Assembly (NCBI GenBank): GCA_965240325.2
Contig: OZ251224.1
Span: 2,356,001 to 2,420,000 of the forward strand
Source: Rebecca billardiae RCC1528
Taxonomy: Eukaryota; Protista; Haptophyta
Length of the DNA stretch: 64,000 bases
Reading direction: 5' to 3'
Shown here: positions 7,856 to 61,061 of the stretch, piece by piece
Layout of the letters: every line of letters begins with the position of its first letter
Position numbering within the stretch: the first letter of the stretch is position 1
The notes under the pieces: model-generated
What the model was told of the DNA's origin: nothing
Seen by the model: the letters and a program-made list of their open reading frames with translations, nothing else
The model's database searches: none
Program-made: the position numbers and the translations under genes

Positions 7856-10800
7856 TCAGTCGTCGTCATCGGCGCCGTACACTCCGTCACTGGATCCACG
7901 TGCCAGCAACGCCTCCGTGGCACGCTCGACAGCGGCGCGATCCCGGGGGTTCAGCCGATCCGTTTTGACAGCGTACTTCATCTCGTCGTCTTCGGCCGGG
8001 CCGTCGAATTCGCGCAGCTCGCAGTGCTCCGCGCCCAGGACCATCCTCCACGTCTGAGGCAGCAGAGCCTCGAAAACTCGCGTCAGCGCTCTGTATGTGT
8101 GCGGGGGCGACAGCTCGCCGCCCTTCCGGCTGTCCTCCAGCTGCCACGGGGCGCCCGGCAGCCCGAGCTCCGCCATGTCCTTCACCTGCGACGTGTACGC
8201 CCAGACGCTGATCTGCTCCTTGAGCGCGTAGATGCCTTGCGCGTGCTCGACGGCCACCGTGTCGACGGCCTTCCACACGCGCAGCACGTTCTCCAACGCC
8301 CACGTCTTGCGCAGCCAGCTCGGCACCAGCCCGTCCTCCGGCAGCCCCATCTCGAGGCCCCGCTTGAGGTGCCGCATGAACGCGCCGCGGCGGCGGTTAG
8401 GCGCGCTGGAGGTGGTCCAGGTGGGCTGCGTGCCGCCATCGTCGCCGTAGTGCGTCACGTCGAAGGTGATCAGCTTGTCGCCGAGCGGGTTGTGGATCGC
8501 TTCGATCGCGCCCGTGTGCAGCGCGATCAGTAGCACCGTCACCCGATCGAGGGCGTGCGGGTAGTAGCTCGTCCTCATGTGGAGGAGGCTGCTCTTGCCC
8601 GAAGTGTCGAGGTCCATCAGGTCGCCCAGCAGGTCCAGGTGCGTCCACGGAGCGAGGTCGCCGTCGCGATCGGTGTCCGCGTCCTTGTGCAGCTCCGGGC
8701 AGCCGGCGAGCAGCAGCGAGAGGTCCCAGCGCGCGCGGTCAGAGCGCGAGAGCACCCCCCGCTCGGCCTCGTCCAGCAGCAGCCTCACCGCGGTCGCGCC
8801 GATGTGCGCGGGCGGACACTCCCTCCTCGGCACGTGCACGCGCGGCCCGCCGCACAGCGGGAACGGGTTGAAGCTGCTCGCCGCCTTGACAAGGAAGCGC
8901 TGCCCGACGAGGTAGCGCGCGAGGTGCACGCCGAGCACGCGCGCCCAGGTCGTGCCCTTGGTGAAGACCGAGGCCATGTACCAGACGAGGCTGAGCATCT
9001 CCCCCTCGCTCATCCGGCCGCGCAGCTTGGCGGCTAGCGCGCCGCCGCCGTCGGGCTGCAGCGGGCCAACTGTCAGCCTGTACCCGCCCGTCTCATAAGG
9101 ATCCTCGACCGACACCAGCCGTACGCCGCGCTTCTCGGCGGCCGTGCGCAGCCGCGACTGGCGCTCGGCGATCTCGACCGTGTCGAGCTCGCGCAGGCTC
9201 TCCGCGGGCACGTCCTTGCCGTGGACCGCTACCCACAGCTTGTGGGCCGCCTCCAGATCGGCCGGCCTGCCGAGCGCCAGCCGCGCGTGCGGGTCGCCGA
9301 GTCGGTGCGCCGCTGCGTATAGCAGCTCGGACACGGTGGCGAGCTCACTGCCCAGCTCTGTGCGCACGTCGGGGTCGCTCATCGCCACCTCGAACTCGAG
9401 GCCGAGCCGGAACGGGCTGAAGCCGCGCCGGCCCCAGCCGATCAGCCTCCGCGACCTCACCAAGTCGAACATGCCGGACGTGCGCAGCGCGAGCAAGTCC
9501 GGGTGCTGGTCGTCGATGGCGGGGAGCTCGGCGGCGGCGTCGGCGGCGTCGGCGTCAGCGTCGGCGTCGTCGGCGTCGGCGACGCGGAGGTTGAACAGCT
9601 TGATGATGCGCTTGGCGGCCGCGTCACTCTCGGGTCGACTGGCGATCGGGCGCAGGTTGTCCACGACGGCGCGGATTGGCTGTGCGCCGTCGTCGACGCC
9701 ATCGTCGCCGCCATCGTCGCCGCCATAGTAGCTACGGCTGCCGCCGCGGCGGCCGCCACCGCGACCGCCGCCATGATCGCCGCCGTCGAGCTCGCCTGAC
9801 GAGAGGAGGGTCAGCACGACCACCGCGAGCACGACCACCGCTATCGGCCCGCACACGACAGCCAGCTTGCGGTCTTCGCGCCGGTTCGCGCCACCGCGGC
9901 CCCGCGCCCTGCGGCCACCGCCGCGCGCACCGCCGCGCTCGCCGCCGCGCTCGCCGCCGCGAGGGGCGAGCAGAGCACCGGCGCGCGCGCACGCGTCGCG
10001 CACTGCGCCTCGCAGTGGCGCGAGCCGGCGCGCGGCGGCGATGCGCTGGCGGCAAAGCGCCGCCGCCATCGCCGCCGCCCAGCGCACCGCTGCCGCGCGC
10101 ACCTCCAGCAGCCACCGCCGAGCAGTGTCGCACGCGTGCGCCACGCTCGCCCCAATGAGCGCCCCGAGCGCGCGCACCGGCGCCATGCAGCCGGCGAGCG
10201 TCGCGCAGAGCAGCAGCATGAGGCGGGACCGCTGCACCTCCGCGACGAGAGCCGGGCGGTTGGCCCCGGCCGCGTCATCGAGGCCGGCCTCAGACCCCGC
10301 GTCCGAGCCCGCGTCCGAGCCCGCGCCGGAGGCGGCCGCGGCCGGCGCGGCCATCGTGCCGGTCAGCTCCGCGCCCACGCCGGCCGCAGCTCTCGCCTGC
10401 GCCGCATCGGCGATGAGCGCGCCGGTGGCGAGCAGCTCGCACTCGCGCCGGTGTGCCTCCTTCCAGTGCACGCGGAAGCACGCCTCCGAGCAGTAGCGCG
10501 CGATCCTGCAGCGCCCGTTGCACCGGAAGCGCCCACGCGCATCGCAGCCGATGCTTGCGCACCGGCGCGTGTGCCGATACTCGCACGAGCGGATGTGCGC
10601 CGCGAGCTCGTCGAGCGCGACGACCGCCGGGCAGCCGTCCCCGGCGAAGTCGCAGGTGATGCGCTGCCGGCCGATCAGCTCGCGCAGGATCCGGCTGCTT
10701 TGCACGAGCTCATTCGGAGCGATGGGCTGCCGGCACGTCGGGCAGCCCGCCTCGGGGTGCGCCGTGATCCACTGCGTGATGCAGTCGCAGCAGTAGGCGT

Positions 10801-10909
10801 GCTCGCACTCGGGGCGCTGGCGCGGATCGCGCAGCACGTCCGAGCAGTACGGACAGAGCGTCAGCTCCTCGGGGGGCTCCGCGAAGCGCGTCGTCGCATA
10901 ACCCACCAT
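7856..10909 (-). CDS. RING (C3HC4) + TRAF/Sina-type Zn finger + MYND finger + TM + unknown C-terminal domain; putative E3 ubiquitin ligase
   Basis: MVGYATTRF..CPYCSDVLRDP..CEHAYCCDCITQW..CPTCR and ITCDFAGDGCPAVVALDELAAHIRSCEY resemble the RNF41/NRDP1 N-terminus. MYND-like CASIGC..RCNGRCRIARYCSEACFRVHWKEAHRREC. TM LAVVCGPIAVVVLAVVVLTLL. Continuous ORF; start taken at ATG 10909. Confidence 0.85.
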   Translation of the reverse strand: MVGYATTRFAEPPEELTLCPYCSDVLRDPRQRPECEHAYCCDCITQWITAHPEAGCPTCRQPIAPNELVQSSRILRELIGRQRITCDFAGDGCPAVVALDELAAHIRSCEYRHTRRCASIGCDARGRFRCNGRCRIARYCSEACFRVHWKEAHRRECELLATGALIADAAQARAAAGVGAELTGTMAAPAAAASGAGSDAGSDAGSEAGLDDAAGANRPALVAEVQRSRLMLLLCATLAGCMAPVRALGALIGASVAHACDTARRWLLEVRAAAVRWAAAMAAALCRQRIAAARRLAPLRGAVRDACARAGALLAPRGGERGGERGGARGGGRRARGRGGANRREDRKLAVVCGPIAVVVLAVVVLTLLSSGELDGGDHGGGRGGGRRGGSRSYYGGDDGGDDGVDDGAQPIRAVVDNLRPIASRPESDAAAKRIIKLFNLRVADADDADADADAADAAAELPAIDDQHPDLLALRTSGMFDLVRSRRLIGWGRRGFSPFRLGLEFEVAMSDPDVRTELGSELATVSELLYAAAHRLGDPHARLALGRPADLEAAHKLWVAVHGKDVPAESLRELDTVEIAERQSRLRTAAEKRGVRLVSVEDPYETGGYRLTVGPLQPDGGGALAAKLRGRMSEGEMLSLVWYMASVFTKGTTWARVLGVHLARYLVGQRFLVKAASSFNPFPLCGGPRVHVPRRECPPAHIGATAVRLLLDEAERGVLSRSDRARWDLSLLLAGCPELHKDADTDRDGDLAPWTHLDLLGDLMDLDTSGKSSLLHMRTSYYPHALDRVTVLLIALHTGAIEAIHNPLGDKLITFDVTHYGDDGGTQPTWTTSSAPNRRRGAFMRHLKRGLEMGLPEDGLVPSWLRKTWALENVLRVWKAVDTVAVEHAQGIYALKEQISVWAYTSQVKDMAELGLPGAPWQLEDSRKGGELSPPHTYRALTRVFEALLPQTWRMVLGAEHCELREFDGPAEDDEMKYAVKTDRLNPRDRAAVERATEALLARGSSDGVYGADDDD

Positions 10910-11255
10910 TGGCTCGCGCCCGAGCGTCGTGGCTCCGCAGCGGGGGGCGAAAAACCAAAACAAAATGCTGATGGTGCATGTGCATGCGTTCCGGACCCAA
11001 GTCCAGACGTCCCCGGACCTTGCGACATACAATAATGCGTCTGCCAGTCTCCTCCGACGCACTCTGTCTCTGCGTCTGCGGACAGCGCGGTGGCCCAAGA
11101 CTCAGGTGCAATGTTGACGCTGTGCCGCGGCACAGCCGGCACGCCGTCGCGCCCACGCCCGCGGTCCCAGGTCGCGCGACACGCGCGCCCACCGCGGCGG
11201 CGCTGCCCGCGCTCACTATTCATTATTCAAGACATACATTATAAGTGATGAGACA

Positions 11256-12425
11256 CTAAGCCACGCGGTACACGATGATGTAGGACGGCAGCGCCTGCTG
11301 CGCCGAGTAGACGACGTTCTCCTCGTAGTTGAGCGCGCCGCCGCGCGCGGTGGTGAGCCCGAGCACCGAGTCGTACGCGCCGCCGGCCCCGCGCGCGGCG
11401 AGGTGCATGTCGATCTGCTCCTCCCCGAGCGCCTCCTCCGCCGTCTCGAGCGTGCGGCCGAGCAGCACCTTGCAGAGGAACATCACACGCACGCCCGCGC
11501 GCTCCGACGGCGCGGCGTAGTCGTGTGCCTTGGAGGAGGTGCGGCTGGTGTACAGGCCGCGGCCGTAGCGCAGCTGCATGCGCGTGCCGCCCGGCCCGCT
11601 CCCGGCGAGGTTCAGGTCGAACGAGCGCGCGCAGATCGTGCACACGCTGCACTGCTGGTCGTGGCACGGCCCGGCCGACGGGTCGATCCCAAAGTTGCAC
11701 AGCAGCCCGGTGCCGTGGAAGCGGCGCACCTCGTTGGCGCCGCCGTGGGGCTCGAGCGCGCGCTGGCACGCGAGGTAGCGCGCGAGCACGTCCTGCGCGT
11801 TGCGCACCTGGTACACGCGCAGCACCGTCGGGCACGCCGACGGGTGCTGCCAGCCCGCCGCGAACTGCTGCTTGACGCCAGCGTACCGGGGATGGGCGTT
11901 GGTCAGCTCGCTCAGCGTGTAGTCGGGCTCGCCCGCGCGGCCGCGGAAGACGCGGTTGACCCAGCGGGGGTCCATGCCCGCGATCGCCGGCGGCACGAGC
12001 CCGCGCTGCCGCGCCGTCACGGCGTGCGTGCGCCCGCAGTAGTCGTGCTGGAAGCCGGTGGCCTGGTCGATGAAGCACGGCGCCGTGCAGCCCGGGAGCG
12101 AGCAGATGGGGTCGCTTGAGCCGCCCTCGCCCTGGCGTGGGCGGTTCGAGGGCAGGTGCAGCCCGCGTGCCTGCGCCTCCTGCGCGTGCGAGAGCCCGCA
12201 GAACTCGTGCACCCGCCCGGTCTCGCGCTCGAAGAAGACCGGCAGGTTGCACCCCGGCAGCGCGCATTCGTGGCAGATGCCGTGAGGGTCGGGCAGCTCG
12301 CGGCCTTGCGAGGCGAGCGCCTGCTGGGCGTGCGTGCGGCCGCAGAAGTCGTGGGTGATGCCCGTGCGTGCGTCAGCGAAGGCGGGGCGATCGCAACCCG
12401 GAAGCCGGCACACCGCCGACGACAT
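11256..12425 (-). CDS. PARP-family ADP-ribosyltransferase with three N-terminal Cys/His repeats
   Basis: H-Y-E type motifs: EVRRFHGT, YGRGLYTSRTSSKAHDYA, VMFLCKVLLG, YDSV, LNYEENVVY..ALPSYIIVY. Three CxLPGC-x13-H[DE][FY]CGxxHA repeats. Intronless; alternative in-frame ATG at 12527. Confidence 0.9.
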   Translation of the reverse strand: MSSAVCRLPGCDRPAFADARTGITHDFCGRTHAQQALASQGRELPDPHGICHECALPGCNLPVFFERETGRVHEFCGLSHAQEAQARGLHLPSNRPRQGEGGSSDPICSLPGCTAPCFIDQATGFQHDYCGRTHAVTARQRGLVPPAIAGMDPRWVNRVFRGRAGEPDYTLSELTNAHPRYAGVKQQFAAGWQHPSACPTVLRVYQVRNAQDVLARYLACQRALEPHGGANEVRRFHGTGLLCNFGIDPSAGPCHDQQCSVCTICARSFDLNLAGSGPGGTRMQLRYGRGLYTSRTSSKAHDYAAPSERAGVRVMFLCKVLLGRTLETAEEALGEEQIDMHLAARGAGGAYDSVLGLTTARGGALNYEENVVYSAQQALPSYIIVYRVA

Positions 12426-12564
12426 GGCACGGCGTGGAGGGCAACGATGCAGGGTACCGGCGTGTTCGTCACGCCCGCCCAAGAGGACCCTTGCCAACAC
12501 GAAGCCGCCCGGACCGAAAGTCTCCATCCGGATCAGAGCGGGACAGGTCGCAGGACTTGGACGT
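12426..12564. promoter_or_regulatory. Putative bidirectional promoter between the PARP-like and NADAR genes
   Basis: Divergent ATGs at 12425 (or 12527) on - and 12565 on +. Inferred from geometry only. Confidence 0.45.
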
Positions 12565-13407
12565 ATGATGGCGCACTCCGTTGGTGGCCGTCAAGTGGAC
12601 GCGCCGCGCCCGATCGCGCTGATCCCTGACCCCCGCGGAGAAGGGCAGCAGGCGGGCGTGATCGCGTTCTACTACCCCGGTCGCGACACGCCATGGGATG
12701 CCGCGTGCGGCAGCCGTTTCCTCGGCAACTTTTACGAGGCGGCGCGCGGCTTTGAGTTTGCACCACCCGCCGCCTCGCGCGGCGAGGCGTACGTCTTTCG
12801 AAACGCCGAGGCGGCGTTCCAGGCGTGCAAGTTCTGGCATCTGGCCGCAGACTTCGCCAAGTGCACGGGCCACGAGGCCTTCCAGCTCAAGCGCTCGCTA
12901 AGCGGCCGCGAGGACTGGACGTACGGCGGCTCGGGCGGTGAGCACGAAGGCTCGGGGGCAAACTGGCGGGCGATGCAGCTGGTGCTCGCGGCCAAATTCG
13001 CCCCCGGCTCGGCACTCGCCGACGCGCTGCTTCGTACGGGGGACGCCTTCTTGCTCGAGCACAACGCCGCAGTCGGGCGCGACGCCGCCTGGTCTGACAA
13101 CGGCGACGGATCGGGTGCCAACTGGCTCGGCGCACAGCTCATGCTCTTGCGAGACGAGCTCGCCGGCTCGGCGCGCGATGCCGGGAGCTGGACGAGATGG
13201 ATCGCGAAGTGGATCGACGTCGGCACGGGCGCTGACCTTGGCAGCCGCTCTGAAGCTAGGCGTGACAATGCTTGGCGGAGGAGTGTGCGCGCAGCCAGCA
13301 CAGTCGTTATCGGCCAGTTTGGCGACCCGGCCGGAGCAAAGGTGCTGCCGGCTGGTGGCCGGCTGGGCCCTGCGGGCGCTTCGACGGCGGGCTCCCATGT
13401 GGCGTGA
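12565..13407 (+). CDS. NADAR (YbiA/DUF1768-like) family hydrolase
   Basis: IAFY...FLGNFY, FRNAEAAFQACKF, MQLVLAAKF...LADALLRTGDAFLLEH...RDAAWSDNGDGSGANWLGAQLMLLRDEL follow the canonical NADAR motif series. Intronless; start at ATG 12565. Confidence 0.9.
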   Translation: MMAHSVGGRQVDAPRPIALIPDPRGEGQQAGVIAFYYPGRDTPWDAACGSRFLGNFYEAARGFEFAPPAASRGEAYVFRNAEAAFQACKFWHLAADFAKCTGHEAFQLKRSLSGREDWTYGGSGGEHEGSGANWRAMQLVLAAKFAPGSALADALLRTGDAFLLEHNAAVGRDAAWSDNGDGSGANWLGAQLMLLRDELAGSARDAGSWTRWIAKWIDVGTGADLGSRSEARRDNAWRRSVRAASTVVIGQFGDPAGAKVLPAGGRLGPAGASTAGSHVA

Positions 13408-24672: not shown

Positions 24673-27600
24673 CTACTGGTCATCGTCGGGCTCATCCGCA
24701 TGCAGGGTGAGCTCCTTGAGCAGCCGTTCGTCCACGCCCGCGCCCGCGCCCGCGTCCGCCTCGCCGCACCCGCCGCCGGACGGCGGCGCCGACTCCGCCG
24801 CGGAGGCAGCAGCGGCGGCTGTGAAGACGCCGTCGGCTGCGACCGCGCCCACGAGGTGGTACGCGCGCCCGCCCTGCACGAGCGCGCCCTTCTTCGTCTT
24901 GAGGCTGCCGAGCATGCGCAGCCCCACGCCGTGGTTGTACACCGAGTCGTCGAGCGCGCTGCCCCAGTCGAGCCGCGCCTCCCAGCCGGCGTCCCCGCCC
25001 GCCGCCGGCGGCCACGGCTCTGTCGCCAGCCGCGCGCGCATCTCTGCGACGATGGCGCGGGCGGCGTCCGCGCCGAGGACCAGCTGAGGCGCGTGCAGGT
25101 GCGCGCCGCTGCGCACGCCCGCGCCGCCGTGCTCGTCGACGGCCGCGCACGGCCGCGCGGCAGTGATGAGCACACGCCCGACCGACGACGCAGCCCCGCC
25201 GCCGCCGCCGCCGACCGCGGCGGCCGCGCACTGGAGCGTGCGCGCGAGGTGCGCGAGCCGAGGCGCGTCGAGGTGCGCGGGCGCGCAGCGCACGTCCACG
25301 TCGACGAAGAGGCGGAAGCGGCGAGTGTCCACGAGCTCGCACAGGTAGCGCGGCGCGCGCTCGGCGGCGTACACGGTGCGGAACTCCGCGCGGAGCGCCG
25401 CTGGCACGCACAGCAGCTGCGTGCGCGCGGTGCCCACTGCCATCCGGAGGTGGGTGGCGCGCGCGCGCCGCCGCGCCGCGCCGCCGTCGAGCACGCAGCC
25501 GCGCGCCGCGAGCCATTGGCTCAGGCTCGACGGCGGCGGCTGCGGCGGTGCGCGCGGCGGCGGCGGCGGCGGCGGCGGCTGCTGCTCCGCGCCGTCGGCG
25601 CCCGCGCCGTTCGGCGCCGCCGGCCCGTCCGCGATGCGCACGGCGGCGGGGTCGCGCTCCCACCGCCGCCACATGGCGGCCACGACCGGCGCTGGCACGG
25701 CGTGCGCCGAGCGCTGCGACAGCCGCACCGCCGTCCGCTCGTCGGCGGGCGGCGCGAGCTCGAGCACGACGACGGCCGCCCCCGCGCGCTTCGCCGTGCG
25801 CACGTAGTACCGGTACTCCTTGAGCCGGCTGTTCGTGTTGTCCACGACCACCACGCCGCCCGTGGCGGCGCGGCCGGCTGCTGAGCCGGGCGGCTCGGCC
25901 GACGCGGCGCCGAGATCGGCGCACGCGCGCTCGAACGCCGCGCGGCACGCCTCGTGCGCGCGCGCGAGCTGCTCCGAGTCAAAGGCCTGCGCGTACAGCG
26001 CCGCCGCGACGCGCTCGGCCGCCGACGAGCCTGGCGCGCACGCCTCCGTTGTGTCGGGCGCCGGCGCGGCCTCCCACGCCGGCGCGGCCCCAAGGGCCCG
26101 CCGAGCTCCCGTCGCGGCCTCGTCCCGCTCGGCGCGCGCCGCGCCCTCCGCGCTCGGCGCGCGCCGAAGCGAGCGAGCGTCGCGGCGCGCGGTGCGCACG
26201 GCCGCGCGCCGCGCCTTGGCCGAGAGCGTGGCGCCGGCGGCAAAGAAGTCATCGGCGGAGCACAGCACTACGCCGGCGTCCGCGTACTCGGAGGGCTCGC
26301 TGGGCTCAGAGTGCTCCGGCTCGCTCTCGGCCGCGGCGTCGGCGGGCGCGTCCGCGCAGGCAGCGCCGCCGCGCCCCGCGTCGGCGGGCGCGGGCGCGCC
26401 CGCCGCCCACGCGCGCGCGAGCGCGCGCGCGAGTGTCGACTTGCCCGCGCCAGGCAGCCCACGCAGCACGAGCACGGCCCATGACACGTCGGCGGCGACG
26501 GTCTGTGTGCCGTGTGCGGCCGCAGCCGCGGCGAGCTCGGCGGAGGACGCCGTGCCGGTGCCGCCCTCGCCGCGACGGTCGCGCGGCGGCACCAGCACGG
26601 CGGCCGCAGCCTCGGGCGGCGGCAAGCCCTCAGGCGCCGCCGCCGCCGCCGTGGCGGGCGGTGCTGTGCCGAGCATGGCTGCCGCCGCGCAGGCGCGGAG
26701 CCCGGCGAGCAGCCGGCGGAGCGGGGCGGATGGCGACTCGGCACACACCGCGATCAGCGCGGCCTCGAGCGACGCGTGCGCCACCCCCGCCGCGGAGGAC
26801 GCGCGCGCGGCGGACTTGGACTCCCATTCCCCTTCGCCTTTTTGGCCGCCGCCGCCGCCGCCGCCGCCGCCGCCCGGCCCACCATCGGCAGACGAATCGT
26901 CTCGGCGCGCCCGCCCGTCGGCACTGCTCGCGCCGGGCGGGCGTGCGGCCAGCGCTGCCGCCATGTACGCGTCCATCTGAGCCGCGCTCGCGAGCACGAC
27001 GCCGCCAGCCGTCGACGCCGTCGGGTGCCACGCGCCCGCCGACGCGGCGGGGGTGCCGTCGGGCCCGGCTGCGCGGTCGGCGCTCGCGCGACCGTTGGCC
27101 GTGCGGCCTCCGGAGTGCTCGGCCGCCGCGGCCGTCGAGTGGACCGACCCGTCCGCGCGCGCGGCGGCGTCCTCCGCCGCGGTCGTGGAGCGGCCGCGGC
27201 GAGGCACGCTGAGCGAGAGCCGCCGCTCGTCCCCGCCGCCGTGCGCGCGCGAGTGCCGCTTGCGGTCGTGCCCCGCGCCCTTCCGCCCGTCGCTCTCCGA
27301 GTCCACACCGTGTGCGCGCGCGTACGCGTGCACGGCCGCGCGCGCCCTGGCGTCTGGCAGCTGCGCGCGCGAGAAGCGAAGCCGAGCGCCGGCGGGCGCG
27401 GTGTGCACAAAGTCGAGGACCAGGGCGCGCACCTTGGGGGCGAGCAGCTCCAGCGCCGCGTCGGCGGCGGCGCTCGCGGCGGGCGGCGGCATCGGCGGCG
27501 CCCAGGCCGGCAGCCGCTGCGGATGCGCCGCGGCCGCGCCCTCCGCGCGCGCTGCGGCCGGCGCGGGCGGCGAGGGCGGCGGCTGTAGCTCGAGTCCGAC

Positions 27601-27784
27601 CACGCCTCGCACGCGCAGCTCCGCGCTCGAGCTGCCGGCCGAGGCGCCAGCCTCCTCCCCCTCCTCGCCACCGCCGCCGCCGCCGCCCCGCCGGGCGAGG
27701 GCGCTGCCTCCGCCCTCAGCGCCGCCGCCCAGCGCGCCGTCCGCGTCGTCGAGCGGCTCCGCGACTCGGCGGTCGGCGGCCGCG

Positions 27785-27840
<56 letters not shown>

Positions 27841-30800
27841 GTTGTCGTCGTCGGCGTCGGCGGCGTCGGCGGCGGCGTCGGCGGCGGCGCTAAGAAGCTG
27901 GTTGGAGTAGACGGCGCCTGTGCCCTCCGCGGTGGAGATGGTGACGTGCGGGTGCGCGTTGGAGCCCAGCGCGCCGAGCACGAACACGCCGTGCACGTCC
28001 TCCTCCGCCGCGCGCACGCGCACCGCCTGACCCCTCGAATCCGCCGCGTGCGCGTGCAAGCGCAGCGTCAGCGCGTGCCCAACGTGCGGCCGCAGCCGCT
28101 CGGCGCACCAGCCGAGCGGAGGGGCGAAGCGCAGCGTGCAGTGGTGCGCGTGCACCGTGCCGTGCAGCGCGGGCCAGCGCTCGAGCAGCGCGCGCTGGCT
28201 CGGCGGGTCTAGAAACACCGCCGCGTAGAAAGGCGGTGGCGGAGGCGGCGGCACCGCGGCCGCGGGCTCGGCGGCGGCGGCTGCGGCGGCGGAGGGCGGC
28301 GGCCGTGGCGCCTGGCGTGCGGACTCAGACTCCGCCGCCTCCGCCTCCGCCGCCTCCTCCGTGTCCTCGTCGTTCTCGTCTGTGCCGCACGTGTCCGCGC
28401 CGCCCTCCGCCTCGCCCTCGCTGCTCTCCTCTGCGCCGCCATCGCTCGACGGCAGCAGCGGCGGCGCGCCGGCCACGGCCTCGCCCCCGCCGGCGTCGGA
28501 GCGCGCCGCCGAGCGCGCCGCGCGCGCGACGGCCGCGCAGCCGGGCACGAAGCGCGCGCGCAGCTCGGGCACGCTCGGCAGCAGCACGGCGGTCTCGGGC
28601 GCGAGGGACGCCGGCGCGGCCGCCCCCGCGTGCGCCGCGAGCGCCTCGAACAGCGCGAGCGGGAGCACCGCATCCGCTGCCGCGTAAGCGATTTGCTCGG
28701 CGCTGAGTGGCGCGCGTGCCGCCCAGTCGGACGCCTGCAAGCGCTTTTGCTTCGACGGGAGTCGGCGGGCGAGGACGGCCCAGCACGCGCGCGCGGCGCT
28801 GGGCGGGTCGGCGGCTGGCTCGGCGCGCGAGAGCACCGCGTGCACCGCGCGCTGCGTGTCCAGCACGCGCGGCACCGCGGGCGGTAGCGCGGCACGCGCC
28901 GCGCGCGTCGGCAGCGCGTGCGCCGCGGCAGCGCCGAGCCTGCACAAGTCTTCGGCCGCGGCTCCGAAGCCGAGGACGAGGGTGTGCTCGGCGCGGAGCA
29001 GGGCGAGCGCGGCGCTGAGGAGCTCGGCGTGCGCACGGCCGCGCTGCCGCCGCCGCTCGTCCGCCGGGACGACTGGCACGGCCGCGCTGCCGCCGTGCCC
29101 GCCACCGTGAGCGCCCGCCGCCGCCTCTGCCACGCCTGCGGGTGCGGCCGCAGCCGGCGCCGGCGGCGCGGCCTCCGCCGCAGCGGCGTCCTCGAGGGGC
29201 TCGCCGCCCAGCCCGCCGAGCAGCCGGATCAGGTACACGCGCAGCGCCGGCGGCTCTGCGCCGCCGCCGCCCCCGCCGCCGCCGCCGTCGGCTGAGGCGG
29301 CTCCGCCGCCCGCCGAGCGCACAGCCAGCTGCAGCAACGAGGCCGCGTGCCGGCGGCGGCGGGGCGGCGGCGCAGAGTCCGGCTCGCCGCATGCTCCGGC
29401 GGCTGCCGCGCCAAAGTCGTCGGGGCGCCACTCCACATCGAGCCCAACGAGCAAGCGCGGCGCGCCGCCGGGCGCGGACGACAGCGCGTGTCGCGCGCAC
29501 GGCGCGCCGGCGCGCTCGGCCGCGGCCGCACCAATCGCTCGAAGCTCGCTCGCAGCCGCGAGCGCAGCCGCCACGTCGTGCGGCTCGACCAGGCGGACGT
29601 GCCACGCGCGCGCGGCGTGCCCGGCGTCGTGCGCGCCATCGCCGCGGGGCGCGCCGCCCGCCGAGCCGTCCGCACCCGGCCCGAAGCACGGCGCGTCCGC
29701 GGGCGCGTGCGCCTCGCGCGCGCGCGCGCACACGGCGGGGGGCAACCGCGCGGCGGCGGCGGCGGCGATGGCAGCGGCTGGTGTGGCGATCGCCGCCGTG
29801 GGTGCGGCGCTCGGCGGCGCGGGCAGGACGCCGAGCGCCGCCGCCGCCGCGTCGGAGCGGAGCAGCGCCGCCAGCCGCGCGCGCGTACGCGCGCTCGACG
29901 CGCTCGACGCCTCGTGGTGCACGAACACGCCGCCGGCGCGCGACCACGCTGCTCCGATTGCTTCGCGGTCGTCGATCAAAACACACGTCCCCGCCGCGGC
30001 GGCGCGGATATGCATGTGCTTGTCCGACGAGGCGCAGGTGATGACGGGGGTGGGCGCGGCGCCGCCGAGCTCGCGCGCGCACCACGCGCGCTTCTGCGCC
30101 GCCGCGCGCGCGCCCGCCTCGCCCGCGCCCACGCCGGTCAGTATGCACAGTGACGAAACAAGGCGCGCGGCGCGCAGTCGTTCAAGCGCCGACCAGAGGC
30201 TGCGCCCGGCGGCCGTCCACGGAAGGTTCTCGAAGAAGTCGCGCTTGCGCGAGATGGCGCGCCAGAGGAGCCGGCTCGGCGTGGCCGCGATCAGCCGCGC
30301 CGCGAACGCCGCCGAATCGCCGTCCCCGCCACCACCGCCGTCCTCTTCGTCGTCCGCCGCGTCGGCGGCGGCGTCGGCGGACGCCGCGGCCGCGCCTCGC
30401 GCTCGCACGGAGTGCCGCGGCGCCGCGGGCAGCGCCGGCAGAGGGATGTCCCCGGCGGCGCACAGCCGCGCGACGAGCGGCGCGGCCGCGGCGTTGAAGT
30501 CGCACAGCACGCCGTCCAGGTCGCAGAACACGTGCCACGCGGCAGCCGGCGCCGACGCGCCGTCACCCAGGGCCGGCGCGGCCGCGGCCGCGCCCGGCGC
30601 GCCCGGCGCGCCGGCCCCCGCTCCGCCGCCGCTGCGCGCGGCCGCGGCGTCCGGCCGCGCGCTCGGCTCGGCCGGGCGCGCGCCCGCGCGCTCCGCCCGG
30701 TCCACGCGCACGAGCGTCTTCGTCTCGAGCGCCAGCTCCAGCGCCGCCTGCAGCTCGGCCGCCCCGAACCGGGTGCCCGTCCGGATGAGAATACCGCCGA

Positions 30801-33800
30801 AGCTCCCGGACTCGGCGAGCGCGCCGCCGGCGGGCGGCGCGCGCGACGACCGCGCGCACACGCGCGAAGGGCCAAACTGCGCGAGCAGCAGCGCGTACCG
30901 CGCGTCGCCGTTGTGCGCGTCAAAGTCCGGCGCGTCCGGACTGCGCGGCGGCTGCAGGTCGAGCCGGAGGTCCAGCACGCCGCCGCCGCCGCCGCCGTCG
31001 GCCGACGCGAACTTCTCCCAGAGCCCCTTCAGCTTGCCCTCGGAGCCGGCGTATCTCGGCGCAATCTCGAGCTCGAGCGGCGGCTCGAGATCGCCATCTC
31101 TACAGCGCAGCTCGAGCGGCGGCTCGAGATCGCGATCTCGAGAGCGCTGCTCGAGCGGCGGCTGCCGAGCAGGGCCCGCCGCGCCCTCCGACTGCAGCAC
31201 GGAGCCCTCCGAGCCCGCGCCGCCGCCCTCCTCCTCCACGCCGCCGCCGGCCTCGAGCGCGGCCGCGCTCGCCACCGGCGCGCCCGCGAGCGCGGCCGCG
31301 CTCGCTGCGGGCGCGCCCGCGAGCGCGGCGAGCTTTCGAGGCAAGTAGACGCGCACCAGGTGCTCGACGAGGCCCGGGGGCGGCGTCCGTGGCGTGATGG
31401 CGCCGGGCGGCGCGTGCAGGGGCGTGAGGAGCACGCCCGCCGCCTCGCCCTCCGCACCCGGCCGCGGCGGCCACGCGCGCGGCACGTGCGCCGCGCCACC
31501 CCACCGCTCCCAGTGCAGCCACAACAGGCGCTCGACGGCGCGCGCGCCCTCGGCCGAGGCGGCGGCGGCGCCCAGCTCGCGCGTGAGCGCGCGCTCGAGC
31601 GAGGGCGGCGGGGGCTCGTCCGCTGCGCCGCAGCCCGCCGCGCCCGCCCGCCCGCCTGCGCCCTCCGCCGCGCCCTCCGCGCCGCGCAGCAGCGCGAGGG
31701 CGAAAGACCGTGACCAGCCCGCGCCAACGATACGCGCGGCCGCAGCCTCGCGCGCGGCCGCCGCGCGCGCCGACGCGGAGGGTGCGCCGCCGCCCGCCGG
31801 CGTGGCCGCGTCGGCCGCCGCGCGCACCGCGCACCGCGCCCAGCGCGCGTACGCCTCCATCCGCGCGCCCAGCTCCTGCACGCGCGCGCGCGCGGCGGCT
31901 GCGAACGTCAGCAGCCGATCCGCCTCCGCCTCAGCAGCCGCGCGCACGGCCGCGGCGGCGTCAGCGGCCGCGGCCGGCGCGGCGCGCGCGCGCGCGTGCT
32001 CGCGCGAGGCGGGCGCGGCGCGCGAGCTGCCCGCGCGCGGTGCGGCCTCGGCGGCGGCCTGCAGCAGCAGCGACGCGCACAGCGCTAGCTGGTCGTCGCA
32101 CCCATCCGCCAGGACGAGCGGCCAGATCGCCGTCGGCGGCACTGCACGCAGTGTTGGCCGCGCGCGCAGCAGCGCTGGCAGTACGGGCGACCCCGCGGCG
32201 CGCTTGCTCGCGCCGCTCAGCGCCAGCCACCAGCCCGTCTTCAGCTTGAGCAGCACCTGCGTCCGGCCGCGGCGCACGCCATCCTCGCCGGCAGCCGCAC
32301 CGGCGGCGGATGCGGCGGCGGCGTCGGCGCCGGAGGCCGGCGCCTCGCTGTCGCGCGGCGCTGCGCCACTCGAGCCCGCCGCCGCGCGGAGTCGACACGC
32401 ATCCGAGTCCTCGTCGCTCTCGCGCGCGGCCGCGGCGTCGTGCGCTGCGCGGGAGGGCACCGTGACGCACAGCACCGCGCCCTCCATCCCCGTGCATGCG
32501 CGCACGCGCTCGAGCAGCGCGCGCGTCGCGCCACGCGCCGCGACCGCCGAGGCCGCCGCCGTCGCGCGCGGCGGCTCGGGCGACGCGAGCACAGCGGCGC
32601 GCGCCGCGTCCGCAACCGTCGGCACATGGAAGGGCGCGGCGCGGCGCGCGAGCTCGGAGGGGTCGCACACGTACTCGCCGGTGCGCACGCAGCGCAGCGC
32701 GAGCAGCGTCAGCTCGTCGCGCTCGTGCGCGATGCTCCCCACCGCCTGCCCCCTCGCGCACCACTCGAAGAGCGGCGTCCATCCCTGGCCCAGCCACTTG
32801 CGAGCGAACGCCGAGTAGCGGCGCGCGGGGCGCGCGGCGCGCGCGGCGCGCACGTGCGCGGCCACGGCGGCGCACGGGTGCACGCGCGTGGCCCACACGA
32901 GCGCTCGGTCGTCCGCCCCCGCCCCGCCGCCCGCCTCCGAGCACGCGCCGCCCTCCGCCTGCGCGCCGCCCGCGTCGCTCGACGCGGCGGCGGCGGCGGC
33001 GGCGGCGCCGGTCGCTTCCTCCTCCGCCTCGGCGCGTGCGAACGGGTGCGGGCGCGGCAGCAGGAGCGGCGAGACGAGGCTGCCGTCGAGCTTGGTGCAC
33101 AGCGTCGCGTGCTCGAGCAGCGCGCGCACGCGCTCGTCCTCGTCCGCCGCGGCGCTGGCGGCGGCGCTGTTGGCGCTGCCGGCGGCGCCAGGCAGCGGCA
33201 GCCGCGGCGGCGGCGCCGGCTCGCACGGCGGCGGCGGCGGCGCCGGCTCAATGCTACACAGCGCATCGATAGCCTCCGCCTCCGCCTCGGGTGCCTCGTC
33301 GACGTTGAAGAACTTGTGGAAGCGGCGCGCGAGCACGTGCCCCGTCTGCGCGCACACGAGGAGCCCGCGGCACTCCCGCCGGAGCGCGCGCAGCCAGCGC
33401 TCGCGCGTGCCGCGCCGCGCGCCGCCCGGGTCAGCAAACGTGCCGCCCGCGCCCGCGCCCGCGCGCTCGGCGCGGTAGTCGAAGGCGATGTACGCGCCCA
33501 GGTCGACTTCGACGAAGGCGTCCGACGACGCGATCGCCTCGCGCACGAGCGGGAGCACGTTGCCCTCGAGCACGGGGAACGCCCCGTGCATCTCGAGCGC
33601 CGCCAGGGCCAGACGCAAACGCGCGCGCGCCACGGCCGCCTCGGCCGCGACGGCGGCGTGGCGCGCGGGCTCGGGCGGGAGGGTCGCGCCGGGCGGTTGC
33701 GCTGCGCACAGGCTTGGCTCGGCGCTGCGTCCCTCAGCTCGCGCCTCGCGCGCCTCGTCCGGCGCCACGCCCGCGGGCGAGTTGCCGTCGGCCGCCGCGC

Positions 33801-34401
33801 GGCTCGGTAGCTCGAGCCGAGGCACCGGCGGCGCGTCGCGCCAGTCGACGAGCACGGCGCTCGCGGCCGAGGGCTTGCCCGAGTACTCCTCGCCGACGGA
33901 CACGTTGACGATCGCGTCGTCGCAGAGCATGTGCGCGCACTCCCCGCGAGGCAGCTCCGAGCCCGGCGCGTGCGCGCCGACGCGCGTGCGCAGGAAGAGT
34001 CGAACCCGCGCAACGTCGCGCGTCCTGAGCTTGAGCTTGTTCGCGGCGGCCGTGGCGATGGCGTCAAAGTGGGGCTCGACGACGACGACCGACGACGCGT
34101 CGCCGCGGCCTTTCCCCACGTTGCGCGCGAGCCCAAGCCGCACTTTCTTCGGTCTCGCGCCTTCCGGCATAGCGGCCGGCCCTCGTTGATGTACCGAGTC
34201 CGTGCCTGTGGGACTGGGACAAGGCCGGGCCGCGCCTTCCGTGCCACCGGTCGGGCGGCCCCGGAACTGTGGGCCGGAATCGGGAAGCATGGCGGTCGAA
34301 TTTCGCTCAAGACGCTCGCAGCTGGTCGACAACGGCCTCCTTGGGTGGAAGCTGGTCGAGCGAGTCGGTGTCCACGCCTCGGGACCGATCGCGCCTCGCA
34401 C
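24673..34401 (-). CDS. Giant intronless multi-domain RNA/nucleic-acid repair protein: Ub-like, Rnl1-type ligase, unknown domain, HAD nucleotidase, DEDDy 3'-5' exonuclease, 2H phosphoesterase, R3H, P-loop kinase, AEP primase-polymerase
   Basis: Ligase: RECRGL, FHKFFNVDE, TKLDGSL, LFEW, MEGAV, LKLKT (~33600-32200). HAD: FCDLDGVLCDF..LIDDR (30540-29910). Exonuclease: GLDVEW..LLQLA..SDW..QIAYAAADA (29455-28640). 2H: HHCTL..HVTIS (28230-27885). R3H: RAAVHAYA (~27320). Kinase: RGLPGAGKST..SADDFF..VDNTN (26480-25650). AEP: FVDVD..GAHLH..DSVY..LRMLGSLK (25525-24840). True start may be ATG 34290 or 34170. Confidence 0.88.
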
Positions 34402-34897
34402 CTTTGCGCGAGCTTGTCAGCAGCCCCGCCCCGCCGCCCGAGCCAGCGCTCGCCCTTGCCTCTTGGGCTTGGCTCCATCGCCAGTCGGGAGGAATCACTG
34501 CGCCCAGCCGGAGCAGCTCAGCTGCTCAGCGCCACACACAAACTCCCAGTACCGTACCCTGGGGCTTGTAGCGTTGCAGCAAGTTGTGTTTCAAATACAT
34601 GCGCGGCTGAGTGGTGGCAGGACACCGCGCCCCGGGCGCGACGTGAAATGCTGTCGATGTCGCTGGCGGTGTCGCTGGCCGCATCGTCACGCTGGAAAGC
34701 GCGCAATTCTTTCCAAGCCGCTCCTGAGTCCTGACCAGGTTTGCGCTCAACTTTGGCGCCTTTCCGTCGTCGTAAGAAATGCTTCGATCTGACGGCCGGC
34801 TTGCAGCCGTTTCGTCACACGAAAAGCCCCACTCGGAAGTGAACCGGTCGGCCCAGTGCCCACTGCAGCAACGCGCTCCTCGCGCACAATCAGCGCG

Positions 34898-37121
34898 ATG
34901 AGCGTCGTCGACGCACGCCTGCTCGCCGACGACGAGGCATGCGAGGCGGGGGCGGGCCGATCACAGCCTCAGCTGCCTCCGCGCTGGAGCCGCACCGGGC
35001 TCTCCTGGCCGCGCGCCGCCGCTCTCGCCGCGCTCGCGCTCAGCGCCTGCCTGATCGGCACGCGCGTGCGCCCCGATGCTGACCCGCGCGGCGCCGGCCT
35101 GCTGGCTCGGCTGCGCCAGGCGGGCCCGGGCTCGCCACCGCTGCTCACGCCGACCTGCGCCATGGTGATTCAGACCGTGCGCGACTCCACCGATCGCCTC
35201 ACCCCGCAGCCCGGCTGCGCCGCCTTCCGCCCGGTCGGCGCGGAGGGCGGCGCGGGCGCGGGCGCGGCCCTTCAGCTCGACCTCACAGACGCCGGCACCG
35301 AGCAGACGATCCTCGGCTTCGGCGGCGCGTTCACCGAGGCGTCGGCGCTGACGTGGCAGGCGCTCTCGCCCGAGCTGCAGCACAGGCTGCTCGAGGCGTA
35401 CTTCCACCCCACCGAGGGGATCGGGTACACGCTGGGGCGCGTGCACATCAACTCATGCGATTTCGCGTCGCACTCCTACTCGTTCGACGACGTGCCGGAG
35501 GACTTCGAGCTGTTCCACTTCGACGACGCGGTGTCGCACGACAAGCGCACGCTGATCCCTTTCATCAAGGCCGCGCAGTCCTTCCTCGGCGACGAGCGCC
35601 CGCTGCAGCTCGTCGCGTCGCCGTGGTCACCGCCCGCGTGGATGAAACACAGCTGGGTGAGTGCCGCGGGGCGCGCGCGCGCCGCGGCACGGCCGGCCGG
35701 GGCGTGGGGCGGCCGGGCCGCGCTCGGTGCTGACGCCGATCGTGCCCCTCCTCTGCCGCGCGCCGGCCGCCCCGTCCCGCCTCGTCCTCCCTCGCGCGGC
35801 AGATGATGACCGGCTCCCCGCGCCCCGCCGGGCTGCGCCCCGAGTGCCACTCCGTGTGGGCGCGCTACATCACGCGCTGGCTCGACGCGTACGCGCGGCA
35901 CGGCGTGCAGATCTGGGCGCTCACCCCGCAGAACGAGCCCGAGAACACCGGGCCGTGGGAGGCGTGCGTGTGGGAGGCCGTGGACATGGCCGTGTGGGTG
36001 CGCGAGACCCTCGGGCCGTTTGTGAAGAATGCGCAGCCCAACGTGAAGCTGCTCGCGTATGACCACAACCGGGTGCGTGCGGCGCCGCGCGGCCCGTCCA
36101 GACGGCCCCACGCGCCAGCTGCGCGCGCGCGCAGCTAGCCGGCGGCGCGCTCACCTCCGCGCCCACCCGCCCCGCGCCGCGCCGGGCGCAGGACCACATG
36201 CGGCAGTGGGCGGACGTGACGTTCTCAGACCCAAATAACGCGCGCTGGTTTGCCGGCATGGCGGTGCACTGGTACGCAGGCGACCACTTCGACGCGATCC
36301 GGGACGTGCGCACGCGGTTCCCGGACAAGGTGATCTTGAACACGGAGGCGACGTACGAGAAGCACCGCTGGCCCAAGGCGGCCGACGGCTCGCCCGTCCT
36401 CCCGCTCAGCGGCGACGGCGAGTGGGCGTTTGGGCTGGGCTATGCGCACGACATCCTCGGGAGCCTCACTGCCGGCTCATCCGGCTGGATCGACTGGAAC
36501 CTGCTGCTCAACGAGAGGGGCGGTGCGCGCGCGAGCAGGCGGGCACGCGCGCGCACGGACGGCGGGCAGCCTGAGCCCATGCGCGACGCCGGCGGCGGTG
36601 GCGCGATGCGCCGGCCTCACGCGCGCCCGTCCGCGCGCGCCGATCGCCGCGCGCGCGCCCCCGCAGGCCCCAACCACGCCAACAACGCGTGCGACGCGCC
36701 CGCTGTGGCCAACATCAGCGCGCAGGAGCTGAACTTCCACGCGCAGTACTACGCGATCGGCCACTTCTCCAAGTTCGTCCCGCCGGACTCGACCCGGCTC
36801 GTCGCGCGCGCGACGGCGGGCGACGGCTCCGGTCTGCCAAGCGCGCCCGCGGGCCGACCGTACGGCACGTGCACCGCAGCGGACGGCGTGCAGGCGGCTG
36901 CCTTTGTCCGCCCGGATGGCAAGGTGGCGACGGTGGCGCTCAACTGCGGGGACGAGCCGAGAGACTGGCGCATCGTCGACGGCGAGGTGGCAATCGACCT
37001 CTCCATCCCCGCGCAGAGCATCCAGACCATCCTGCACGAGCGGCCGACGGAGGAGAGCCTCGGCTTGATGCGCGCTCAGCTGGCCGAGTCCGAGGCGGCT
37101 GCGGCACGCCGGCGCGCATGA
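34898..37121 (+). CDS. GBA: GH30 glucosylceramidase-like glycoside hydrolase (about 4 exons)
   Basis: QTILGFGGAFTEAS, GIGYTLGRVHINSCDFASHSYSFDD, ASPWSPPAWMK, ALTPQNEP (acid/base), MAVHWY, NTEA (nucleophile), GWIDWNLLL, YYAIGHFSKFV. Introns at ~35657-35802, ~36073-36191 and ~36523-36666. Confidence 0.92.
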
Positions 37122-60400: not shown

Positions 60401-61030
60401 AGGTGGCGCAGTGGCGTGGCGAGTGGCGTGTCGACTGTGTCGAGCAGAAGCACGCGCGGCTCGGCGAGCGCGATCGCGAACTTCTCTTCGCGCGCCCGGG
60501 CGGCGCTCGGTCTTCGAGCCTTGATGTCGGCGTCGCTCCACACAGAGGCAAAGAGCTCGGCGCCGACCTCGGGCCCGTGCCCACGCCCGCGAATGTCACT
60601 TCCACCGACAGAAGCATCATTGTCCGTGTCGGCAGCGGCCACGCCGCTGCTGTTGGCCGCGCTGATCGGTGTGGCCGCCGCCTCGTCGCTCTGCCGCCGA
60701 TGTTCGCCACCGCCGCCACCGGGCACGTGCGTGGCGCGCGCGCGGAGCGCACGCTCCCACGCTGCGCCGACAAAGTGCGCGTGCCAGTACACGCCGTCCT
60801 TGTCCAGCTTGAACGTCGCCTCGAGGTCGATGCGCTTCCGGATCGAGCCGTCCGCGCCGCTGGGCAGCGCGCCGAGCGCGAGCGCCACCGCGAGTGTCGA
60901 ACAGGTCGCCAAGACGATCGATGCCACCCCGTATGCCACCCGGATCCACACATACACCTGCAAGCGCGTCCTGGCGTCGCCGGTGGAGGAGTCGTCGGGC
61001 GGCGGTGCGCTCGGCGGCGGCGGCGGCGGT

Positions 61031-61061
<31 letters not shown>

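Follow-up and report, generated by a model that had tools for sequence, protein, structure and literature searches.

The open frame on the minus strand

The window analysed here, that is the whole stretch of 64,000 nucleotides from the haptophyte Rebecca billardiae RCC1528 (assembly GCA_965240325.2, contig OZ251224.1, positions 2,356,001 to 2,420,000 of the forward strand), carries on its minus strand a very long open reading frame (ORF) which, judging from its sequence, is probably a functional single-exon nuclear gene whose product belongs to a family conserved among protists and giant viruses, that of multi-enzyme proteins for RNA end repair of the 'Swiss Army Knife' (SAK) kind. The ORF (24673..34401) is listed with a GTG start and a translation of 3,242 amino acids; coordinates throughout are window positions, and residue numbers are those of the listed translation. 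The frame between the flanking stops (24676-34416) is uninterrupted. Rather than at the GTG, translation is likely to begin at the ATG at 34170 (M78), as homologue residues 2-3 align at residues 84-86 and it is only from there that the G+C content of third codon positions (GC3) goes up; in 27 homologues the N-terminal domain starts at residue 1-7 and is aligned to residues 84-88 onward of this protein. The likely complete coding sequence would then be a single exon at 24673..34170 on the minus strand, with 3,165 codons plus the stop (TGA/TAA, 24673-24675), and hence would encode a protein of 3,165 residues.

The relatives used for comparison were found in an exhaustive, profile-free search with residues 2045-3242 as the query, which returned 589 proteins at an expectation value (E) of 1e-3 or below. 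A word-indexed search with the full-length protein found no homologue, a blank that reflects a limit of the index given the 589 relatives found exhaustively.

As the DNA here is about 80% G+C, at which stops are rare, it has to be considered whether several genes, or exons together with their introns, have been read as one frame. Dozens of long, spurious ORFs do overlap the region in other frames, and 36% of the residues lie in low-complexity inserts which are missing from the homologues. However, both transcriptomes and AT-rich genomes (25-36% GC) have homologues in which one ORF holds the same domains in the same order; the GC3 of the inserts matches that of the core, in surroundings where non-coding DNA has 65-71% GC; and the gene contains many internal tandem repeats with a period divisible by three. 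An artefact of the gene model is thus most improbable. Throughout the frame from about residue 80, GC3 is 0.8-1.0 with a lower G+C content at second codon positions, Pfam families match the frame between residues 343 and 3123, and collinear homologues align to it from end to end, which together argue against an ORF that arose by chance from the high GC (80%) of the DNA. The initial annotation, made from the letters of the sequence, had described a single 9.7-kb ORF, and one uninterrupted coding frame is indeed what periodicity, Pfam and the collinear homologues agree upon. The catalytic motifs which it quoted all lie in that frame: KLDG at 437, DLDG at 1294, DD at 1477-78, DVE at 1655-57, YAAAD at 1906-10, HCT at 2087, HVT at 2152, GLPGAGKST at 2648, DVD at 3034-36, H3101 and D3151.

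Inserts were defined as residues in alignment columns filled by fewer than one fifth of 24 full-length homologues. By this definition they comprise 1,147 residues (36% of the protein), with 17 runs of at least 25 residues that are rich in Ala, Gly and Pro (and Asp). Introns concealed in these inserts were considered and ruled out by GC3, which is 0.911 in the inserts and 0.917 in the conserved core, and by the tandem repeats inside the gene, many of whose periods are multiples of three; both indicate in-frame expansions. The 65-71% GC mentioned above is that of the flanking non-coding DNA and of the intron region of a neighbouring gene, a divergently transcribed GH30 glycosyl hydrolase gene on the plus strand (34793-35803 and 36063-37118) with at least two exons. 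With an adjoining gene that is split, an intron-less gene of 9.5 kb is unusual here. Low-complexity sequence of this sort, expanded in frame, is typical of this 80%-GC genome and makes up the additional 36% of length.

Catalytic and binding domains

Six enzymes, an R3H domain and a ubiquitin-like (Ubl) N-terminus had been proposed in the initial annotation, and all of them are supported when each segment is compared with Pfam, with sequence profiles and by fold, although the strength of this support varies between domains. The Pfam scan of the protein's own sequence found nothing for the N-terminus or for residues 760-1280, and phmmer searches of single segments against PDB gave nothing useful; several assignments, namely those of the exonuclease, 2H, R3H and HAD domains, are based on family profiles and motifs and not on the protein's own Pfam scores. 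The domains are described below from the N-terminus, all coordinates being on the minus strand.

The Ubl (beta-grasp) domain (residues 84-180; 33862..34152) stands at the extreme N-terminus of 27 homologues. Its AlphaFold2 (AF2) model has a pLDDT of 82.6 and was matched by Foldseek to the Ubl of TBCE, ubiquitin, SUMO and CIDE (probability 1.0, E 7e-4 to 1e-2), so that both conservation and fold back the assignment. It is followed by a T4 Rnl1-type RNA ligase (residues 260-730; 32212..33624), which scores 53.1 bits with Pfam RNA_lig_T4_1 (PF09511; cut-off 28.3). The family profile of this segment finds T4 Rnl1 (2c5u) at E 1.4e-30 and fungal Trl1 at just E 0.04, and the nucleotidyltransferase motifs I (K437-x-D-G, the KLDG), III (E546), IV (E640-G641) and V (K719-x-K721) are invariant in the family, all of which agree with the ligase type originally named. 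The T4 Rnl1 alignment to the profile ends at T4 residue 262. Beyond the ligase lies a region (residues 731-1030; 31312..32211) in which W760, D769-D770, F833, W854, W964, Y1019 and K1023 are conserved in the family and for which neither a Pfam nor an Atlas match was found. As a separate observation, marine metagenome contigs (TARA and others) encode a 728-residue protein, P0001, that combines a His_Phos_1 histidine phosphatase with a ligase of the Rnl1 type; a length-limited word-indexed search with the ligase segment gave this one match only (E 6e-17).

The HAD phosphatase (residues 1289-1500; 29902..30537) has the motifs D1294-L-D1296, K1461 and D1477-D1478, which are invariant in the family. 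No Pfam match was found for it in this protein, and single homologue sequences also did not reach Pfam NT5C. The family profile (A3), however, finds the mitochondrial and cytosolic 5'(3')-deoxyribonucleotidases at E 2e-12 (4mum) to 8e-9, and in an Atlas feature search (0.94) NT5C accounted for 80 of 100 matches. The phosphatase claim is upheld by these matches, with the refinement that on sequence comparison the domain is of the NT5C 5'(3')-nucleotidase type and not of the T4 Pnkp type.

The DEDDy 3'-5' exonuclease (residues 1650-1925; 28627..29454) is split by long inserts. It scores 22.5 bits with Pfam DNA_pol_A_exo1 against a cut-off of 23.6, whereas the orthologues reach 32-77 bits; its profile (A8) finds Mut-7/EXD3 (7jw2) at 2.5e-25 and the WRN exonuclease at 7e-24, with Rrp6 also matched, and the five catalytic residues (D1655, E1657, D1848, Y1906 and D1910) are all present. 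The 2H phosphoesterase of the cyclic phosphodiesterase (CPD) type (residues 2058-2165; 27907..28230) is the weakest of the domain calls, based as it is on motifs and homologues. Here the initial annotation stands in part: the two HxT motifs it quoted (H2087-x-T2089 and H2152-x-T2154) are nearly invariant across the family (alignment A4), and homologue P0018 passes the cut-off of 23 bits of Pfam tRNA_lig_CPD (PF08302) with 31.7 bits, but the score of this protein itself, 16 bits, falls below it. The corresponding profile placed CNPase and the Trl1 KIN-CPD on top among PDB sequences, with weak matches at E 0.3-0.5. Likewise the R3H domain, of a type that binds single-stranded nucleic acid (residues 2310-2400; 27202..27474), scores 17.5 bits here against a cut-off of 26.8, but R2354 and H2358 are conserved and three of the four orthologues scanned reach 30-38 bits, with the fourth, the Cymbomonas sister protein P0003, at 26.4.

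The last two enzymes pass Pfam cut-offs in this protein itself. The P-loop kinase of the polynucleotide kinase (PNK) type (residues 2640-2920, split by inserts; 25642..26484) has GLPGAGKS at 2648-55, D2717, DNTN at 2854-57 and R2897, and scores 31.4 bits with AAA_33 (cut-off 27) and 27 bits with KTI12 (cut-off 22); its profile (A6) finds PSTK at 2e-8, Pnkp1 at 1e-6, mammalian PNKP at 1e-5 and T4 PNK at 3e-4. The archaeo-eukaryotic (AEP) primase-polymerase (Prim-Pol; residues 2963-3185; 24847..25515), which is PPL4/D5-like, scores 36.4 bits with PPL4 (PF18188; cut-off 25) and 23.8 bits with AEP_C962R (cut-off 23), and its profile (A7) finds the poxvirus D5/OPG117 primase at E 3e-8. Its DxD, sGxH and hD motifs (D3034/D3036, H3101 and D3151) are invariant in the family, and the gene is the only PPL4 locus of the genome. 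A search of the literature on PPL4/PF18188 and SAK retrieved nothing relevant.

Between the ligase and the phosphatase lies a ninth conserved module which, like the post-ligase region, had been overlooked in the initial annotation. It was found in 34 homologues with 10 invariant columns (alignment A2), which form the pattern E-G-K...G...E.F...D-L-R-x-D-x-Q...H.G...Q.G, and is referred to here as the RxDxQ module (residues 1103-1245; 30667..31095; E1121-G-K1123, D1144-L-R1146-x-D1148-x-Q1150, H1163, Q1175 and T1208). In two proteins, P0040 and P0014, it is placed after the AEP domain, and this shift in position suggests that it acts as an independent module. No Pfam family matches it, Atlas feature searches gave no usable match, Foldseek against PDB found nothing at E 0.001 or below, an Atlas shape search reached a TM of just 0.32-0.40 (GGDEF and others), and among short proteins the profile search found one 175-residue fragment. 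In an exhaustive structural comparison of its AF2 model (pLDDT 74.9) there was a single outlier, the effector domain of CCTX2 (9S11, residues 639-746), at a modest Z of 6.3 (below 8) with a root-mean-square deviation of 2.9 A over 91 aligned residues and 19% identity, the runner-up having a Z of 3.7. The RxDxQ profile searched against PDB sequences found no match, CCTX2 included.

CCTX2 is a nematotoxin of Coprinopsis cinerea, the C-terminal effector domain of which has a new fold and a biochemical activity that is not known (PMC13324453). The effector carries a motif R685-x-D687-x-Q689 on its central sheet, right after a two-helix insertion (656-683), which is required for toxicity and which the authors considered 'not described for any other protein' (PMC13324453). 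In the model of the module, R1146-x-D1148-x-Q1150 lies on a strand following a short helix and loop, a place equivalent to that in CCTX2 by the aligned ranges. On this comparison both would have an RxDxQ on a central beta-strand directly after a helical insertion, and in the repair family the motif is invariant; they differ in their surroundings, as the CCTX2 effector is part of a secreted toxin, where four lectin domains of the beta-trefoil kind precede it, and not of an RNA repair protein. It is possible, though with a single match of moderate Z we would put it forward only tentatively as a lead, that the module is a true homologue of the CCTX2 effector domain. If so, the constant position of the module within a nine-module RNA end-repair protein would place the toxin domain in its first functional context, an activity directed at RNA or RNA ends, eukaryotic RNA repair would gain an unrecognised enzyme or binding step, and the mode of action of the CCTX family would become directly testable.

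Relatives in protists and giant viruses

The distribution of the architecture was assessed by mapping nine segments on the best 150 of the 589 relatives, with proteins clustered at 50% identity. Among these 150 there are at least 22 clusters of proteins of 1,600-2,500 residues with the same domain order: Ubl, Rnl1 ligase, RxDxQ, NT5C-type HAD, DEDDy exonuclease, 2H, R3H, kinase and Prim-Pol. A Pfam scan of four orthologues found RNA_lig_T4_1, DNA_pol_A_exo1, R3H, AAA_33 and PPL4 in this order, all above their cut-offs except the R3H of P0003 (26.4 against 26.8). The initial annotation knew of no characterised protein with this exact architecture and held that a widespread one would be less novel; the architecture is indeed widespread in protists and giant viruses.

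Members of the family were found in the green alga Cymbomonas tetramitiformis (KAK3259837.1; 2,487 residues), the Archamoebae Pelomyxa schiedti (KAH3743940.1; 2,207 residues) and Mastigella, Balamuthia mandrillaris (KAL6062134.1), the diplonemid Sulcionema, the dinoflagellate Gymnodinium smaydae and the choanoflagellates Acanthoeca and Helgoeca. For Mastigella, Sulcionema, Gymnodinium, Acanthoeca and Helgoeca the homologue comes from one assembled transcript, and two such transcripts are marked 'type:complete'. The names given to orthologues in databases are partial or wrong, for example 'DNA repair exonuclease SbcCD D subunit'; one metagenomic member has been automatically annotated as 'RNA ligase/3'-5' exonuclease/Prim-pol 4/R3H domain'. 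A second clade consists of AT-rich proteins of 1,700 residues on long metagenomic contigs with giant-virus-like gene content. In IMG/VR, the nine modules are found in the same order in single ORFs of 1,709-1,761 residues on giant-virus contigs, among which is a GVMAG; the contigs bearing full-length copies, with a Logan contig among them, are of 25-36% GC and up to 624 kb in length.

In a tree built from 1,656 columns, the giant-virus copies cluster with those of choanoflagellates, while the protein studied here falls within a clade of cellular eukaryotes as the sister of the Cymbomonas protein (SH-aLRT 100), to which it is 44% identical over 1,621 columns. That the locus might be an endogenous giant-virus island was considered and found unsupported: it has the host-like 80% GC, its neighbours are ordinary cellular genes (GH30 with an intron, PARP and RING) and it groups with cellular eukaryotes in the tree. 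In the full-length alignment of 24 homologues, 207 columns reach an identity of 85% or more among the homologues, and this protein keeps 196 of them. The residues kept include the catalytic residues K437, D1294/D1296, D1655/E1657/D1848/Y1906/D1910 and H2087/H2152, as well as K2654/D2717 and D3034/D3036/H3101/D3151 in the C-terminal part; none has been lost. Retention of so many conserved positions, every catalytic residue among them, points to purifying selection and not to a relic. Compared with its orthologues this copy is 30-90% longer through the 17 inserts rich in Ala, Gly, Pro and Asp. We know of no protein with this architecture that has been studied at the bench, the orthologues being uncharacterised; the kind is known although no experiment has touched it, and the protein adds to it a new member of unusual length.

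Upstream in the window, a PARP catalytic-domain protein (11259-12590) and a RING/MYND-finger protein (7859-11101) are encoded on the minus strand, and an open frame on the same strand (52228-63999), which looks coding and has 3,924 codons or more, continues past the window end.

Predicted RNA end repair and its alternatives

Large eukaryotic fusions of kinase, 2H, HAD, R3H and often ligase domains make up the SAK group of RNA repair proteins, which Burroughs and Aravind are said to have predicted in NAR in 2016. The name is carried by Pfam families present in relatives or in this genome, namely HAD_SAK_1 ('HAD domain family 1 in Swiss Army Knife RNA repair proteins') and PTP-SAK. The protein described here resembles this group in the fusion of a PNK-type kinase with 2H, HAD and R3H domains, and its kinase-2H unit is homologous to that of protein P0017 from the choanoflagellate Salpingoeca urceolata (domains MJ1316, AKAP7-2H, AAA_33, CPD-like 2H, HAD_SAK_1, R3H and NUDIX), which the kinase and 2H segments match at E 1e-18 and 3e-10 respectively. 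However, the order is 2H-R3H-kinase here and kinase-2H in P0017, the HAD_SAK_1 and PTP-SAK models found no match in this protein or in four orthologues, and the Rnl1 ligase, DEDDy exonuclease, Prim-Pol, Ubl and RxDxQ module are additions beyond SAK.

Likeness and difference are also seen with two further systems. With phage T4 the protein shares an Rnl1-type ligase, a PNK-type kinase and a phosphatase of the HAD superfamily; in T4, however, Pnkp and Rnl1 are two separate proteins, which repair tRNA after cleavage by PrrC, the phosphatase is a DxDxT Pnkp-type HAD instead of the NT5C type, and 2H, exonuclease, Prim-Pol, R3H and Ubl are absent. The C-terminal tRNA-binding domain of T4 Rnl1 is in turn unmatched here, the alignment stopping short of it. 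With fungal Trl1 and plant RNL it shares a PF09511 ligase, a P-loop polynucleotide kinase and a CPD-type 2H in one chain, but these proteins have the order ligase-kinase-CPD, whereas here the CPD comes before the kinase and the chain has four more enzymes or modules inserted in it; PF08303 (tRNA_lig_kinase), the model of the fungal kinase, has no match in this protein. The protein would function in the manner of T4 Pnkp plus Rnl1 and of Trl1. Differing as it does in domain order, in the type of HAD and in the kinase and CPD models, it belongs, on comparison of sequences, to neither the T4 Pnkp/Rnl1 nor the Trl1 kind.

The pathway of healing, trimming, filling and sealing suggested in the initial annotation is the natural inference from this combination, and the predicted chemical steps, substrate and order of action would be as follows. 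Once a ribotoxin, a stress RNase or an anticodon nuclease had cut an RNA, its ends would be a 2',3'-cyclic phosphate and a 5'-OH; the Trl1-CPD-like 2H domain would open the cyclic phosphate, the NT5C-type phosphatase would strip the resulting 2'- or 3'-monophosphate, and the PNK-type kinase would add a phosphate to the 5'-OH. The WRN/Mut-7-type DEDDy exonuclease may trim damaged 3' ends and the D5/PPL4-type primase-polymerase may put back lost nucleotides, whilst the R3H domain would hold single-stranded RNA and the T4 Rnl1-type ligase, via Lys437-AMP, would join the 3'-OH to the 5'-phosphate. The Ubl N-terminus and the RxDxQ module might serve in targeting or in some further step. The closeness of the ligase to T4 Rnl1, as well as the position of a phosphomonoesterase next to the 2H domain, favours such a T4-style joint over the 2'-phosphate-dependent joint made by Trl1; T4 Rnl1 needs no 2'-phosphate.

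Several points weigh against this reading and it should be considered with some caution. The NT5C family is known for mononucleotide substrates and not for polynucleotide ends; WRN-like exonucleases, PNKP-like kinases and AEP polymerases also serve in the repair of DNA ends; two of the conserved modules, residues 731-1030 and RxDxQ, match no Pfam family; and the protein's own exonuclease, 2H and R3H segments score under their Pfam cut-offs, with the HAD lacking a Pfam match.

The second of these points raises the alternative of an enzyme for DNA-end repair or priming, analogous to bacterial LigD or to end processing by PNKP and WRN. The AEP domain is nearest to the poxvirus D5 DNA primase, the exonuclease to WRN and Mut-7 and the HAD to deoxyribonucleotidases, the kinase matches mammalian PNKP, and LigD-like fusions of ligase, AEP and phosphoesterase are generally known to exist. 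The sealing domain, however, is an Rnl1-type RNA ligase and not a DNA ligase, and the chemistry of a 2H cyclic phosphodiesterase arises from RNA ends only. An R3H domain is present, the kinase-2H unit is common to proteins annotated as RNA repair, and the kinase has one of its best matches in Pnkp1, which belongs to a bacterial complex for RNA repair. A role at DNA ends consequently appears quite unlikely, and repair of RNA ends is preferred.

Which RNA would be repaired is a separate matter, upon which the remainder of the genome has some bearing. Six-frame searches of the 72-Mb assembly found no match to RtcB or to Archease, and two genes for Tpt1, the 2'-phosphotransferase, are present (C35:914370-914909 and C11:1960282-1960833); by these searches, tRNA splicing in this organism probably depends on RNA ligases of the 5'-phosphate type. 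Further RNA ligase genes were observed. A second Rnl1-family gene (C1:1550006-1554058, plus strand) has one frame of 1,350-1,432 residues in which an RNA ligase (PF09511 and PF09414) is joined to a nucleotidyltransferase of the AbiEii type and a Ham1-like domain. A frame at C3 (about 1806981-1809053, plus strand), which continues upstream, combines a PTP-SAK phosphatase, TPR, an AAA_33 kinase and an Rnl2-family RNA ligase. The fourth ATP-dependent RNA ligase gene, of the Rnl2 type, is a 793-residue frame (C1:1275381-1275971, minus strand) with RNA_ligase (PF09414) and T4_Rnl2_C.

It could therefore be that the protein acts, exclusively or in addition, as a housekeeping ligase for tRNA splicing or for non-conventional mRNA splicing, an analogue of Trl1: the 2H domain would leave a 2'-phosphate, kinase and ligase would heal and seal, and Tpt1 would clear the 2'-phosphate from the junction. 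Besides the lack of matches to RtcB and Archease and the two Tpt1 genes, no other locus unites a ligase of the Rnl1 type with a PNK-type kinase and a Trl1-CPD-like 2H domain, the genome holds no paralogue of the kinase or the 2H domain of this protein, and searches of the rest of it found no tRNA_lig_kinase or tRNA_lig_CPD locus of the fungal type. The wider family speaks differently, as amoebozoan, choanoflagellate, dinoflagellate and giant-virus members indicate that the family as a whole is no lineage-specific essential ligase, and the ligase profile is, as described, far nearer to phage T4 Rnl1 than to Trl1. Three other ATP-dependent RNA ligase genes are available, including the phosphatase-kinase-ligase fusion; a plant-type tRNA ligase could escape six-frame Pfam searches, and Tpt1 is generally known to be common even where splicing does without it. 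Splicing as the function of the protein is thus unlikely overall, though less so than a role at DNA ends, and it is the repair of RNA cut under attack or stress that we continue to favour. In a genome in which RtcB was not detected, the protein is nonetheless a candidate tRNA-splicing ligase.

What makes the finding valuable is that the set of enzymes is so complete, that it has spread into giant viruses and that the RxDxQ module offers a lead. A single chain with every activity predicted for the rebuilding of cut RNA would provide a compact model of RNA repair and possibly a tool enzyme. For the family as a whole, its spread through green algae, amoebae, choanoflagellates and giant viruses suggests a part in conflicts over the integrity of RNA, whether between host and virus or between predator and prey.

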